A DNA stretch of 64,000 nt, taken from the NCBI RefSeq assembly GCF_000189555.1, contig NC_017276.1; one strand, 5' to 3'. The translations under genes and the position numbers were made by a program. The notes below the pieces were generated by a model. That model was given only the letters and a program-made list of their open reading frames with translations, did no database searches and was not told where the DNA came from. Position 1 is the first letter of the stretch; the number at the start of each line of letters is the position of its first letter. The DNA comes from Saccharolobus islandicus REY15A (GTDB taxonomy: Archaea > Thermoproteota > Thermoprotei_A > Sulfolobales > Sulfolobaceae). This document shows positions 2,181 to 53,260 of the stretch, in pieces.

Positions 2181-3026
2181 TTGAGCATCATAGAGTTTTG
2201 GCTAGAAGCTAAGACTACTATAGACAAATTAATCGAACAATTTCTAAATTCAAATAGGGATTGGGATCTAGTTGATATAAGTACTTATATTCTTAAAGAT
2301 GGTAAGCGCTTTAGGGGAACTTTAAACATGTTCTTTACTGTTGCTTTAGGTGGAGATATTAAGGACTCTTACGGTGGTGCTTTGGCTATTGAAATTTTAC
2401 ATTCTGCTTCTTTAGCTTTAGACGATATAGTTGACCTTGACGTGACTAGGAGAGGTGATAAAGCTGCGTGGGTTATATACGGAAATAGGAAAGTAATATT
2501 CATAACCAATTATCTTATTCCCACTGCTCTCAGGATAATTCAGACTTCTTATGGTGACGATGCGTTAAATACGAGCATTGAGTTGTGGAAAGACACTTCA
2601 GTTGGCGCTTTAAGGGATATGTATGATAATAATGATTACATACGAACAATTGAGTTAAAAACTGGTAGTTTATTTAAGCTTTCCACAGTGTTATCTGCAT
2701 ATGCTTCTAAGCACTATAATACGAAACAACAGATGTTGGATGTTGGCAAGTATTTAGGAATAATCTATCAAGTAATAGACGACTTTGTTGACTATAAAAC
2801 TAAGAAATTAGAGGAGATAGATGGTAGTGCCAAGCAATTATTCAAGTATTACAGAGAGGGAAAGTTGGAAGAGTATGTTAGGTCAGTATATTTAGAATAT
2901 AAGCAAAAATATGATGAGCTAATAAGTAACATTCCCTTCCAATCTAAATATATTAGTGAGATACGATCCCTTCCAGAGTTCTTAGCTAACGGTCTTCTAA
3001 AGGAGGCTAACATAGATAAGATTTAA
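2181..3026 (+). CDS. Hexaprenyl pyrophosphate synthase (trans-prenyltransferase)
   Basis: DDIVD first aspartate-rich motif, DDFVD second motif and KT motif; matches the recalled S. solfataricus HexPPS; GGAGG SD upstream of TTG. Confidence 0.95.
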   Translation: MSIIEFWLEAKTTIDKLIEQFLNSNRDWDLVDISTYILKDGKRFRGTLNMFFTVALGGDIKDSYGGALAIEILHSASLALDDIVDLDVTRRGDKAAWVIYGNRKVIFITNYLIPTALRIIQTSYGDDALNTSIELWKDTSVGALRDMYDNNDYIRTIELKTGSLFKLSTVLSAYASKHYNTKQQMLDVGKYLGIIYQVIDDFVDYKTKKLEEIDGSAKQLFKYYREGKLEEYVRSVYLEYKQKYDELISNIPFQSKYISEIRSLPEFLANGLLKEANIDKI

Positions 3027-9512: not shown

Positions 9513-11099
9513 TATAACTACAAGTAAAACATATGGTGCTACTAAGGGAATCCAAAACGTTTTTGAAGTATAACTCCCTACGTCCTCTAGCGCCTTTAGC
9601 ATAATAGAAATTATTTTTCCGAGGATCTTTACACCTTTTATCTTAACCACTTTATATTCTATGCTATTTATCTCCTTCATATTCTCTGTGGATCTCTTAA
9701 TTAGTTCAGATGCTTTATTCACGATATCTTCACAAAAAGTAGCTGGAGAGTATGTAATCCCTAGGCTTATCCCAGTACAAGAGTGATCATCTGGTGTGAC
9801 TAAAATTACCTTATCAACGATTTGCCTGACTGCACTGGATATAGCGTTATTAAGTTCTTTAGTTGAGTTATTAGCGTAGATGTAAACTATAGATACTCTC
9901 TTTACTCTATCATCAAATGTGAAGACTCGTATACGACTATCACATAATCCCTCACATGTTTTAGCTAATTTTCCTTCTGCATATCCTACCAAAAGTTTCC
10001 TTGTACTTTTAATCCCTCTTTGATCCATGATGAATTCCTTTAAACTATTTATTTCGTGATTATCGTATTCTTTTACTAGAAAAGAGTTATGGCAATCTAT
10101 AAGGTAGTTATTTGAGGATAGCATATACTTCCATAGGGAAGATGGTAAATCATCTATTCCAAACTCAAGTCTCTCCATAAATGATACTCTGAATTTATCG
10201 AATTCTAATGATGTAATATCAAAAGTAGAGCGTTTTTCGATTGAAATGCCGTAAAAAGTGGCCTTATACCAATTACTACGTTCTAGCGTACTTTTCGAGA
10301 TTGCTTCCATTACTTTATTTACCTCGGCTGATGAGGGTAAATCTAATTCATGGCTACCTGGTCCATGAAATACCGTTACTACGTTATTTCTTAAGGTTTT
10401 TTCAATATCATAAACGAATCTAGAACTACCAACACTATCGAAAACTCCGAAATGTATTTGTGGTATCATGAAAAGAAAATCGTCCAATTTGTACATAAAT
10501 ACACTCAGATTAGTTTTTACAGATACTAAATTTAGAAAATTTTCTAGAGGTACTTTATTTTTTTCAGTTATTGCTGTTATGAAGGGAACAGCTACTTGCG
10601 TTGACTTGAACCCAAGTATTTTTACGCCCTTTCTATTAACTGTATATATATAAAAATGGAATATTAAACCTATTATAATTATATAGATTAGAAAGATAAT
10701 TGAGTATTTAACGTAAAATATTATAGGGACATACGATGTAATTCCAGATAGCACTATGGAAGGGATTTCCTTATAACTACTTAGGAGAATATACGCCATT
10801 AGCGGCATGAAAAATCCAAATGCGTAAAATGGAGCTATAGGTAACAGAGAAAGAAGAAGGTAAGGTATCGCAGTTAGATTCATAAGAAATAAGGCTAATT
10901 TTATCTTATTCTTAAAAATTATCGTTAGAAGAATTGAGTAGAGTGCAAATGAAAATAGATAATCGAAAGTTAGTTGGAAACTCCTTAGCATTATAAATAA
11001 GGATTCTGCTGAAAAGGTTGTTGCAAATATTTTTATATTTGGCAGAGTTTTAAGATAACCATAGTATTTCCTTGTTAAGTTTTCAGTATCCATGCCCAT
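9483..11099 (-). CDS. DUF2070-like membrane protein
   Basis: N-terminal TM segments plus [19 protein letters not shown] and TPDDH conserved motifs. Confidence 0.8.
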
Positions 11100-50045: not shown

Positions 50046-50158
50046 ATGGGGGATCTCTGTCTACCTCTACTACCTCCCAAATTAGAGATGTAATTCCGAA
50101 TCAATGGGAGAACTTATGATCCACTAAAGGAACCTTCACAGGACGGAGAGGAGATCAG
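50046..50158 (+). mobile_element. IS200/IS605 tnpB 3'-end remnant (omega-RNA scaffold and right end)
   Basis: One frame reads GGSLSTSTTSQIRDVIPNQWENL, resembling recalled Sulfolobus TnpB C-termini; it ends GGACGGAGAGGAGATCAG, like the GGGCGGGGAGGAGGTCAG right end. Confidence 0.7.
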
Positions 50159-50472
50159 CTTTGATTACTATCCACTACCTCTACTTGTTCCTCTTCCTCA
50201 TCTTTCTCCTCTTCTAATATCTGCAACTTCTTTAACACCTCCACTAATAATGAATCTAACTGCGCAACTTTAGCCTCTAAAAAGGCTATACTCTCATCAT
50301 ACTTAGCGTTCTCCTTTTTCTCTTCATTCTCTTCATTCCTCTCAAAGTCTCCTTCAAGTCCTTTCTTTATAAACAATTTGACTAAATCAGTCATTTGAAT
50401 TCCTAATTCATCAGCCTTCTGTTTAAGTTCGTCATACATCCACTCTGGTAACGATAAATGTATAGTAGGCAT
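50155..50472 (-). CDS. Ribbon-helix-helix (CopG-like) protein with acidic coiled-coil tail
   Basis: MPTIHLSLPEWMYDELKQKADELGIQMTDLVKLFI RHH pattern. Confidence 0.88.
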   Translation of the reverse strand: MPTIHLSLPEWMYDELKQKADELGIQMTDLVKLFIKKGLEGDFERNEENEEKKENAKYDESIAFLEAKVAQLDSLLVEVLKKLQILEEEKDEEEEQVEVVDSNQS

Positions 50473-50621: not shown

Positions 50622-50798
50622 ATGAGAGTTGTAACATTTAAGGTAGAAGAAGACCTATTAGAGTTATTGGATAGATACGCTATAAAATACGGTTTAAATA
50701 GATCAGAAGCAATAAGGAAAGCCATAGAAAAGATGGTAAGGGATGAGTTATCTAAGGAGAGAGTCCCAGTAGCGAGGGTTGAAAAGATAAAGCTCTAG
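50622..50798 (+). CDS. aCcr1: 58-aa RHH cell-cycle transcription factor aCcr1
   Basis: Not in the ORF track (<60 aa). [58 protein letters not shown] matches the recalled S. islandicus aCcr1. Confidence 0.88.
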
Positions 50799-51430
50799 TA
50801 GGATAAAATATACACTAGTTTCTTGCTCTCTTCTATCTTTTCATCTATAAGATTGTTTTTCAGATCTATTCCTCTTACCTCATATTTTATATTAGATAAG
50901 AACTCTTCTGGAGGGTCTAAAGGCATGTAATGTCCTTTAATCCAATAGTGTATTGGGATTATAATTTTAGGTGAAACTTTATCAATTATCTCTAGTGCTT
51001 CCTTGTAATTTATAGTTATTACTCCACCTATGGGTATTAAAAGGACATTCGCTCCATATAATTCCTTATAAATACTTTCGTCTGGAAGGTGACCTATATC
51101 TCCAAGATGGACAATCTTCTCACCGTCATTCTTTTGTATCACATATATACTATTTTGTCCTCTTAATTTACCGTTATACTTATCATGGTAACTCTTTATT
51201 CCCTTTATGGTGTAATTAACGTAATTTAAAGAGCCATAGAAGTTCATTTTGAGATCCTTGTATTCGAAAATTTGGTATGCGTTATGATCGTAATGATCGT
51301 GTGTTATTAAGATTAGATCTACCTTTTTTATATCTGGCTTAGGTAAACCAATACTTCCCCCATCATGCGGGTCAATTAATATTTTATCATCAATTAAAAC
51401 ACAAGAATGCCCAAAATATTTTAGTACCAT
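50795..51430 (-). CDS. Metallo-beta-lactamase fold Zn hydrolase
   Basis: [12 protein letters not shown] and HLGD motifs. Confidence 0.93.
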
Positions 51431-51438
51431 AAGATCGT

Positions 51439-52598
51439 TTAAGAATTCATCAATTTAAGTGCAATGTTTTTCGCATCTTCCACTGTTACCTTATTACCAG
51501 ATTCAGCTAATTTCTTAATCTCAGCTAGGACTATCTTTAATTTATCTTCAGATAGGTATATTCCTTGTTCTTCTAATAATTTCCTTAAACCATGTATCCC
51601 ACTGTGCTTGCCTAATGCCAATCTTCTGAAATTACCTACTTCTTCTGGCGAAATTGGCTCATATGTGAAGGGGTTTTCTATTACTCCATGAACGTGTATC
51701 CCAGATTCGTGACCAAAGGCATTATCTCCAACAATTGCCTTGAAATAGGGCACTGGTATGCCAGTCATTTCAGCCACAAACCTACTTACCTCATACAATT
51801 TCCAAGTTTTCACATTTGTCTCATAATTTAGTAATTTCTTTATTCCCATTACTACTTCTTCTAGTGATGCATTCCCAGCTCTCTCACCTATACCATTTAC
51901 AGTAACGTGAGCCTGTCTAGCACCAGCGTATACACCAGCTAATGAATTCGCTGTTGCTAAGCCGAAGTCGTTATGGCAGTGAACACTCACTATTATTCTC
52001 TCACCTACGAAGTTTACAATTTTCTTTATCATATCGTAATACTTGAAAGGATGCATAGTTCCTACTGTGTCTGGTATATTTATCCTTTCTGCCCCTGCTT
52101 CTATTGCAGTTCTAATTGCTGTGAACAAGAAGTCCTCTTCAGTTCTTGTTGCGTCTTCTGGGCTAAATTCCACTATCATACCGTGATCTTTTGCGTATTT
52201 CACGCTTTCATAGATCTTATTTAGAACTTCCTCTTTTGTCATCTTTAATTTATATTTCATGTGCAATTCTGAAGTGGCTATGAATAAGTGTATACTTGAG
52301 ATTCCAGTACTTATTGTCTTATCTATATCGTTTTTATTGGATCTAGATAATCCAATTACTTCTACTTGATCCCCTACCTCTTCGAAAATCTTTTTAGTAG
52401 CTATGAATTCTCCTTCTGAAGATGCAGGAAAACCTGCTTCAATTACATCAACACCTAGATCTGCTAAATTTCTAGCTATCATTATTTTTTGCTCTATTGT
52501 TAGATCTATACCAGGAGCTTGCTCACCATCTCTTAAAGTAGTATCAAATATCCTAATTTTTTTAGGCGTAGAGAATACTCATACCTCGTACGCACCAT
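51439..52598 (-). CDS. leuA: 2-isopropylmalate synthase lacking the regulatory domain; the 5' end is split by a -1 frameshift
   Basis: DTTLRDGEQ (upstream of the track start), HCHNDFG and GIGERAGN motifs. In-frame TGA at 52579-52581; the only leaderless-positioned ATG (52598) is in another frame. Confidence 0.85.
52533..52598 (-). other. 21-codon leader [24 protein letters not shown] containing the A-AAA-AAA slippery heptamer
   Basis: Manual translation; TTTTAAAT box starts 28 nt upstream of the ATG. Confidence 0.55.
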
Positions 52599-52630
52599 GA
52601 TAACTTCGGTATAATGCTATTTAAAACTTA

Positions 52631-53260
52631 CTATTCATCATAATTTAAAACTTGTTCAATTATCATTCTGGCTATTTCTAACTTTTTTCTTTTTATCATC
52701 GAAGCTGGTACGTCTCTCTTATAGTATGGTTTAGAGTATTTTCCAATAATTCCGGATTCAAAATCCATGGCATATAATCTTATTTTCCTAGCTCCCATGT
52801 ACTTTGCTAAAACTACGGACCTATCTCCGTCAGTGAACCCACCATATAATCTTAAACGACCAAAAGGCATCACTTGTGAATTCGGAATTACCTTATCCAT
52901 CTCCTTGACCTTAGGTAGTAAACTGATATTATCACCATGAGCCAACACTACGTATATCGGGTTTTTATGGAAATTTTGAAGACCATCCAAATCAGTTACC
53001 ACAATATCAGGGATAACTCCTATATTTATGAGATAGTTTGTGGCACCATCCGCAGCTATTATAACGTCCTCTTCAATCTTATTTATTTTATCCAACTGAG
53101 GACCTGCTCCAACTACTGCAATTTCCCTTCCCTTAATTATGTCTCTCAATTCAGACTCATCGTACTCCTTGGTTACTAGATAGTTTAGTATTGATGCAGA
53201 AATATAGTCATCCCTTTCTTTAAATCCGAACCAACTCCTTACTATTTTATAAAAGTTCAA
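52631..53260 (-). CDS. 6-hydroxymethylpterin diphosphokinase MptE-like (DUF115)
   Basis: VVGAGP, IAADGA, VVTDLDG, HGDN and GGFTDGDR motifs. Confidence 0.88.

Follow-up and report, generated by a model that had tools for sequence, protein, structure and literature searches.

We analyzed a 64,000-nt stretch of Saccharolobus islandicus REY15A DNA (NC_017276.1), here called the window, to whose full length all positions refer. The subject is its minus-strand leuA gene for isopropylmalate synthase (IPMS), the committed enzyme of leucine synthesis. The frame of this enzyme is closed upstream by a TGA and holds no ATG, GTG or TTG between that codon (52581-79) and the catalytic motif DTTLRDGEQ, and its first ATG, at 52482, lies downstream of the motif. 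A first-pass annotation made from the letters of the window had described this layout, and its sequence statements are all correct. The enzyme frame comprises the following features.

51439..52578, minus strand: IPMS reading frame, 379 sense codons past the TGA plus stop, without regulatory domain
52480..52482, minus strand: first in-frame ATG, start of the 347-aa GenBank product without the catalytic motif (annotation records)
52519..52545, minus strand: DTTLRDGEQ catalytic motif, read directly
52555..52557, minus strand: ATT taken as the start by RefSeq and its Prokaryotic Genome Annotation Pipeline (PGAP), giving a 372-aa product MRIFDTT... (PGAP gene in L084 and L085; L numbers label the compared loci and lineages)
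52579..52581, minus strand: TGA closing the enzyme frame and overlapping a conserved ATG (ATGA), read directly

A constrained gene without an ordinary start

The NCBIfam model NF041069 (IPMS_Sufob) scores 730.2 bits against a curated cut-off of 600, the alignment pairing profile positions 1-370 (of 371) with residues 8-378 and setting profile position 1 at ATT 52557. Domain searches found HMGL-like (PF00682, E = 1.3e-91) and HCS_D2 (PF22617, E = 1.6e-26), and even the nearest structures in the database are only distantly similar, namely 3rmj (E = 1e-88) and HCS of S. acidocaldarius (6ktq, E = 6e-72). The protein is a Sulfolobales-type isopropylmalate synthase, with a putative activity and a putative substrate, 2-oxoisovalerate as against pyruvate or 2-oxoglutarate, assigned from the equivalog model alone. 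The LeuA_dimer regulatory domain (PF08502) was absent from the window enzyme and its Sulfolobales homologs in the domain search, which agrees with the earlier remark that this enzyme lacks the allosteric domain, and it is present in homologs from Nitrososphaerota/Thaumarchaeota and Methanopyrus.

The missing start is neither a sequencing error nor the mark of a pseudogene, and strong purifying selection acts on the gene. Over 191 nt of the 5' region an independent assembly (L081) shows 100% identity, the exact 347-aa truncated open reading frame (ORF) is indexed in 297 assembly blocks, and the ratio of nonsynonymous to synonymous substitution rates (dN/dS) is 0.049 and 0.046 against the start-less Saccharolobus-like relatives L082-85 and L110, at dS > 1.3. 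A pseudogene, a strain-specific lesion or a sequencing error would be in keeping with the truncated GenBank product of 347 aa, from which the catalytic motif is missing. These explanations are contradicted by the figures above, by the occurrence of 372-, 370- and 347-aa versions in three species and by the same architecture in 12 lineages, and we give them almost no weight; the strain-specific deletion that had been listed as an alternative falls with them.

Public records list three lengths for this one gene, 347 aa (from the first ATG), 372 aa (ATT as Met) and 370 aa (ATA as Met), as annotated in S. solfataricus, S. islandicus and S. shibatae. The S. solfataricus P2 entry 'leuA-3' (AAK42554) and the S. 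islandicus entries have 347 aa, and database names for the same gene include homoaconitate hydratase and trans-homoaconitate synthase. PGAP falls back on ATT or ATA starts in several genera, and other callers shorten the protein. Decoding of the TGA as tryptophan was considered and rejected: 390-aa proteins reading '...EVWVFST...' (P0002-P0006, from metagenome genes at L082 272-1444 and L083 44-1216) had suggested a continuous ORF, and the DNA there reads TGA, the caller having used another genetic code. Readthrough of the TGA from an upstream ATG was also rejected, an in-frame ATG being found in L082 and L002 and none in the window, L003 or L110.

The 5' regions of 25 Sulfolobales-group lineages were compared, taken from a genome scan (at least 3 Sulfolobales loci), a metagenome scan and exact-protein look-ups; the metagenome scan used a pattern about 300 codons from the leader and is thus unbiased with respect to it. 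A gene was called start-less when its enzyme frame contained no ATG, GTG or TTG from the nearest upstream stop to DTTLRDGEQ. This analysis revealed that 12 of the 25 Sulfolobales lineages are start-less by canonical codons, as against 1 of 76 orthologs from other archaea. The state is scattered over the protein tree, where 5-6 changes are needed to account for it. One clade offers a direct view of such a change: L001 and L103 carry a TTG that is the sole candidate start of the clade, and L092 and L102 have TCG in its place in a leader that is otherwise identical. The closing codon of the enzyme frame is TGA in the Saccharolobus and Metallosphaera lineages, A. copahuensis, A. manzaensis, an Aramenus metagenome-assembled genome (MAG; L117), L095 and L096, and the same position is TGT or TGC in the remaining lineages. 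The anomaly is robust, far broader than one strain and apparently undescribed. Among the outgroups, the Nitrosopumilaceae ortholog L061 also has no canonical in-frame start, and in the Methanopyri MAG L004 the nearest canonical start lies 74 codons upstream of the catalytic motif.

A conserved leader block with an out-of-frame mini-ORF

On the minus strand the leader runs TTTTAAAT (52626-19) ... ATG(52598)GTGCGTACGAGGT ATG(52582) AGT ATT CTC TAC GCC TAA AAAA ATT(52557) and continues from that ATT as AGG ATA TTT GAT ACT ACT TTA AGA GAT GGT GAG CAA. Its elements are as follows.

52619..52626, minus strand: TATA-like box TTTTAAAT of the IPMS promoter, read directly, 28 nt before ATG 52598
52592..52596, minus strand: GGTGC, a Shine-Dalgarno-like element and predicted mRNA 5' end, 9 nt before the conserved AUG
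52571..52585, minus strand: ultra-conserved 15-nt block GGT-ATG-AGT-ATT-CTC, from the lineage comparison
52562..52582, minus strand: mini-ORF ATG AGT ATT CTC TAC GCC TAA (translation MSILYA*), one base out of the enzyme register
52571..52576, minus strand: candidate +1 site A-UUC-UC, with P-site AUU at 52576-74, A-site CUC at 52573-71 and the +1 codon UUC at 52575-73

A TATA-like box occupies the same relative place in all relatives, and by hand count the distance from its first T to the following G-run is 28-31 nt in both leader classes: 29-31 nt to GGTGC in long leaders and 28-30 nt to GGGATG in short ones, such as those of S. acidocaldarius and S. tokodaii. This geometry suggests that transcripts probably start at the G-runs. 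GGTGC is kept in the long-leader lineages (the window, L082, L110, L002, L003, L098, L115 and L121), 5-10 nt before the AUG, and the spacer between the two is not coding, because its length varies by non-multiples of 3. The spacing would fit the Shine-Dalgarno geometry of S. solfataricus, which places such motifs about 10 nt ahead of the start (PMC7531240). The conserved AUG would then probably stand about 3 nt from the predicted 5' end in short leaders and 5-10 nt behind GGUGC in long ones, while the GTG or TTG codons annotated as starts in the short-leader species, as well as ATG 52598, appear to fall at or before the predicted transcription start.

Alignments anchored on the enzyme-frame TTC give the block the consensus GGK-ATG-NNN-NTT-CTY at positions -10 to +4. 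Across 11 pairs of relatives the 15 nt show 0-2 differences, at divergences where sites of the four-fold type differ by 46-72%. A map of mismatches is random upstream of -14, near-invariant from -13 to +4 around the TTC, and of period 3 from +5 on, with the variation at third positions of the enzyme frame beginning at the codon directly after the TTC. This onset lies upstream of the mini-ORF stop, of the run of A that follows it and of ATT 52557. The clade of L001 displays the same boundary sharply: the entire mini-ORF (18 nt) is invariant, and 10 of the next 11 enzyme codons have synonymous changes.

A start codon in the register that would need a +1 change is present in 25 of 25 lineages (ATG in 24, GTG in L090). 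This start is displaced 6 nt upstream, without a change of frame, in L105, L118, L119 and L096 (ATG) and in L090 (GTG). The mini-ORF has 5-8 sense codons, or 13 in L096/L100, and encodes peptides of the types MSIL.., MSVLH, MSFLC, MRFLR, MRIL.. and MGN[RY]IL. Its junction codon encodes Leu in all 30 sequences (CTC 20, CTT 8, CTA 2), whereas the overlapping enzyme-frame codon varies among Ser, Leu, Phe and Tyr. Codon 2 encodes Ser through AGT, TCT or TCA, where the enzyme frame reads stop-Val, Cys-Leu or Cys-Gln. Constraint is visible in the other frame as well: the enzyme-frame TTC occurs in 25 of 25 lineages and TTT in none, although TTC accounts for only 57% of Phe codons in these genes (Fisher p = 4e-6). 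CTC is one of the rarest codons for Leu, at 4% of the Leu codons in the ORFs of the window.

An Rfam search of the leader found no family, no conserved RNA structure was found in the comparison (the GCGUA/UACGC pairing of the window is not kept in relatives), and a search for a terminator-like site returned none. A perfect 6-bp hairpin, UUCUCC-N4/7-GGAGAA, follows directly on the block in Metallosphaera yellowstonensis (L002, about 3008-3023) and in L110; it includes the candidate shift site and is absent from the window and most lineages.

The same invariance could come from a DNA operator, or from an RNA site for a translational repressor, at the start of the transcript, the AUG and the Leu codon being incidental and the enzyme starting by a route that this account leaves unspecified. 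About 17 nt of nucleotide-level invariance directly at the predicted transcription start would suit such a site, the window contains the near-palindrome GAGTATTCTC (read directly), and Lrp-type regulators control Sulfolobus amino-acid genes (PMC3597687). However, the palindrome is absent from the Sulfolobus/Sulfurisphaera clade (ATGTCAATTCTC), starts moved by exactly 6 nt together with synonymous Leu and Ser changes point to translation of the mini-ORF frame, and the enzyme would still be without a start. We regard this account as improbable. A LysM operator in particular was tried and rejected: Sso0977 'leuA-2' is a LysM target (PMC3597687), and its LysM motif is absent from the window, which makes Sso0977 a different paralog.

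Proposed routes into the enzyme frame

The first-pass annotation had placed the frame change further downstream. It proposed a leaderless start at ATG 52598 and a -1 frameshift on the heptamer A-AAA-AAA, driven by a hungry UUA codon, as a switch that senses leucine. Two features carry this proposal.

52557..52563, minus strand: A7 run (the proposed slippery heptamer); the enzyme frame reads it as AAA-AAA (Lys-Lys) and the first base of ATT
52533..52598, minus strand: 21-codon ORF from ATG 52598, read directly

Both exist as described: the ORF has 6 Leu codons, the TATA-like box stands 28 nt before its ATG, and the A7 at 52563-57 is followed by TTA (Leu) in the ATG 52598 frame. Runs of seven A or T are also depleted in the window (10 against 55.6 +/- 9.2 expected from dinucleotide-preserving shuffles), with A7 runs at 10558, 18952, 19910, 26969, 30447, 46966, 49980, 52557 and 61984, and fucA1 of S. 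solfataricus uses the similar A-AAA-AAT (PMC8211752). The comparative data contradict the proposal nonetheless. The heptamer is an A5 run (ACT-AGA-AAA) in L082, L084 and L085, which stand for one 88%-identical relative, and no run at all (CCT-AGG-AGA) in L110, genes that are just as start-less and constrained. In the ATG 52598 frame these relatives read A-GAA-AAA (L082-85) and A-GGA-GAA (L110), so that A-AAA-AAA is limited to the species group of the window. What persists is the enzyme-frame coding, in which Lys-Lys of the window becomes Arg-Lys or Arg-Arg (AGA-AAA-ATT in L082-85, AGG-AGA-ATT in L110). Nor is the ATG of the 21-codon ORF stable in the Sulfolobales alignment: its counterpart falls into the enzyme frame in L082 and L002 and into that of the mini-ORF in L098, and L003 has none. 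The distance of 29-31 nt from the TATA-like box to GGTGC in all long-leader lineages suggests that ATG 52598 probably straddles the point where transcription begins.

Substitutions between the conserved AUG and DTT in five clades divide into 27 synonymous and 11 non-synonymous in the enzyme frame, 5 and 31 in the ATG 52598 frame, and 5 and 30 in the mini-ORF frame. In the clade of the window, TCT/TCC and ACG/ACT upstream of the A-run are synonymous in the enzyme frame, and the residue before [IV]RIFD is Lys or Arg (AAA, AGA, AGG or AAG) in 11 of 12 start-less lineages. The enzyme frame is thus entered before 52572 and not at 52557-63, because its coding signature lies upstream of the A-run. 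No stimulatory RNA structure was detected downstream of the run, where there is no consensus fold and single-sequence z-scores are about 0. A -1 shift from ATG 52598 is accordingly a very improbable account of the gene.

In our best model of the leader the ribosome starts at AUG 52582 and shifts by +1 at A-UUC-UC with the Leu codon in the A site, and we would give this model a probability of roughly 40% on the strength of the sequence comparison. An AUG with a +1 change inside A/G/U-UUC-UY is also the simplest reading that covers all lineages. Translation would start at the conserved AUG (52582-80), one nucleotide out of the enzyme register, which GGUGC about 9 nt upstream may serve in long-leader lineages and which would stand about 3 nt from the predicted 5' end in short-leader ones. 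The ribosome would read Met-Ser-Ile, which would put AUU (or GUU, UUU, CUU) in the P site and, in the A site, the rare Leu codon CUC (or CUU). A fraction of ribosomes would then slip +1, from P-site NUU to the invariant UUC, and go on with UCU ACG CCU AAA AAA AUU... to full-length IPMS; the others would decode Leu, stop two codons later and release a 6-residue peptide. Slippage from NUU to UUC is favored because it explains the invariance in both frames, the codon that is always Leu despite synonymous variation, the strict UUC and the onset of the enzyme signature at the next codon.

Scarcity of charged Leu-tRNA (the CUY isoacceptor, with expected anticodon GAG) would slow decoding in the A site and thereby raise shifting and IPMS output. 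A shortage of leucine would thus increase synthesis of the enzyme, because the A-site codon is Leu and the enzyme has no Leu-binding domain. This rationale is close to the earlier idea, with another site and the opposite direction of shift. The notion of a recoding switch that senses leucine stands insofar as there is no ordinary initiation, no pseudogene and a Leu codon at the likeliest point of frame change; the site, the direction and the upstream ORF given for it do not. What we infer from the comparison is where transcription begins, that the AUG is used, that a shift occurs and at which codon, and that it depends on leucine. The fuller claim, that Sulfolobales IPMS is made by an obligatory leucine-sensing +1 frameshift 3-4 codons after the AUG that replaces the missing allosteric domain, is doubtful at present.

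Several points weigh against the +1 shift. Thirteen lineages carry an in-frame GTG, TTG or ATG close to the conserved AUG, and the GAGGG-ATGA-GTG geometry of Metallosphaera would suit ordinary initiation. After a +1 slip, codon-anticodon rules give full re-pairing for UUU and CUU only; tRNA-Ile and tRNA-Val, decoding AUU and GUU, would re-pair with UUC at 2 of 3 positions. The frame-specific counts of substitutions around the junction are low, and the lineages fall short of full independence. The block could be a protein-binding site on DNA or RNA, and +1 frameshifting is undemonstrated in any cellular archaeal gene (PMC8211752). A literature search found no experimental transcription start, ribosome-profiling or N-terminal peptide data: the IPMS locus is not in the supplements of two S. 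acidocaldarius papers on differential RNA sequencing, and no Sulfolobus ribosome-profiling paper was found.

The main rival to the +1 model is non-canonical initiation in the enzyme frame, at ATT 52557, ATA 52551 or GTA 52578, with the mini-ORF as a separate, overlapping upstream ORF that competes or regulates. RefSeq calls ATT (372 aa) or ATA (370 aa), with ATA or ATT in A. infernus, S. metallicus and A. manzaensis, and NF041069 begins at the RefSeq ATT position. GTA 52578 sits 5 nt after a GAGGT motif, and at its position the Metallosphaera lineages and the L096/L100 lineage have GTG, preceded in Metallosphaera by GAGGG at Shine-Dalgarno distance and in L096/L100 by CGATGA instead; L118 has an in-frame ATG just past the block. 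The comparison of lineages speaks against this rival. The RefSeq position is ATT, GTT, GTC, GTA or ATA by lineage, with no conserved near-cognate, and the GTG position is elsewhere GTA, GTT, CTA or CAA, of which GTA and GTT are each two positions off AUG, with nothing suitable there in L092, L102, L105 and L119. Codons upstream of ATT 52557 carry the enzyme-frame signature and the conserved Lys/Arg, which argues against the initiation at this ATT that had been offered as an alternative to the -1 shift. A non-canonical start also leaves unexplained why TTC is never TTT and why the Leu codon is kept through synonymous changes, and aIF1 selects against non-canonical starts in S. solfataricus, according to work cited in PMC8211752. 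Taken together, we consider initiation of this kind unlikely.

Two further routes out of the mini-ORF were tried and rejected. Termination and reinitiation would call for a start-like codon past the mini-ORF stop, and none is conserved, while the coding signature in the clade of the window begins upstream of it. For a +1 shift at the mini-ORF stop itself, the last sense codon is not conserved by eye.

Relation to known systems and genomic setting

The candidate leuA mechanism most resembles autoregulation of bacterial release factor 2 (prfB, CUU-UGA-C). Both have a short zero-frame ORF that ends just past the shift site, a P-site codon ending in UU, a G-rich Shine-Dalgarno-like element upstream and a block conserved in both frames; the P-site codon of leuA may re-pair one base further on, and its A-site codon, if decoded slowly, would report on the end product as that of prfB does. 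They differ in that the prfB A-site codon is a stop, whereas in leuA it is a sense Leu codon and the shift would fall at codon 3-4, right after initiation. In leuA, moreover, AUU and GUU would re-pair imperfectly, 6 nt rather than 3 nt separate the G-rich element from the P-site codon, the host is an archaeon, and the shift is proposed from sequence. Antizyme (OAZ, UCC-UGA-U, polyamines) likewise lets an end product set +1 efficiency, and through it the synthesis of a pathway regulator, and tolerates a first-position mismatch. It is eukaryotic, however, and its shift depends on a stop codon with a pseudoknot downstream, the ribosome or the nascent chain being the target of the sensed molecule; the proposed leuA sensor is the supply of aminoacyl-tRNA, and no RNA structure was found in its leader.

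The -1 shift in S. solfataricus fucA1 (A-AAA-AAT) is the only proven cellular archaeal frameshift (PMC8211752). It shares with leuA the genus and an interrupted yet expressed gene, and differs as a -1 event in mid-gene, where rare codons flank a slippery heptamer and a stem-loop is present; the resemblance of the leuA A-run to it is confined to the species of the window. Among the hallmarks of programmed -1 sites, a conserved heptamer, a conserved upstream ORF and a downstream structure are all lacking. The layout is instead of the +1 type, with a conserved zero-frame start, a short ORF and the main ORF in the +1 frame, and 12 of 25 lineages have no start of their own.

Leader peptides of leu/ilv attenuation, and the leaderless Cys-rich short ORFs of mycobacteria (bioRxiv 10.1101/834739), also place a short 5' ORF with codons of the pathway's own product. 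Relative to leu/ilv attenuation, leuA has a single Leu codon (plus Ile or Val), the hairpins and the terminator of this class were not found, and its ORF overlaps the N-terminal codons of the enzyme in the other frame rather than lying ahead of them. Under the RefSeq ATT call, leuA would recall the AUU autoregulation of infC (IF3), where a non-canonical start is kept for regulation; in contrast to infC, the ATT is not conserved (GTT, GTC, GTA and ATA in relatives) and coding constraint reaches upstream of it, so that the conserved near-cognate start of that type is missing.

As matters stand, there is no agreement on where the committed enzyme of leucine synthesis begins in the Sulfolobales, a group that includes the main genetic model species among crenarchaea. 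If the +1 model holds, it would be the first case of +1 recoding in a cellular archaeal gene and the first biosynthetic enzyme whose own end product directly governs its synthesis through a hungry-codon frameshift, linking aminoacyl-tRNA supply directly to synthesis of a feedback-insensitive enzyme through a compact (about 20 nt), portable sensor element. If initiation is non-canonical instead, a conserved overlapping mini-ORF at a start-less gene of an essential pathway would be a new example of archaeal translational control, and even then the annotation of the IPMS gene would be corrected across Sulfolobales genome records.

No HCS or CimA paralog lies within the window. The gene order MptE-like (PF01973), IPMS, metallo-beta-lactamase-fold protein (Lactamase_B_3), at 50795-53260 on the minus strand, is kept across Sulfolobales genera and was seen in L084, L086, L088, L089, L115, L117 and L121; these neighbors have no apparent functional link, and the MptE-like stop is just about 30-75 nt from the conserved AUG. 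Within the MptE-like gene, a sub-threshold match to the C/D-box small RNA family RF01222 (52698-52752, minus strand; 16.6 bits against a gathering threshold of 80, E = 0.63) is most likely due to chance. Downstream of the metallo-beta-lactamase-fold gene, a 58-aa ribbon-helix-helix protein (50622-50798, plus strand; PF01402 in relatives) stands opposite a 105-aa ORF whose tail is very acidic (50155-50472, minus strand), and this pair is kept in L081 and L084.

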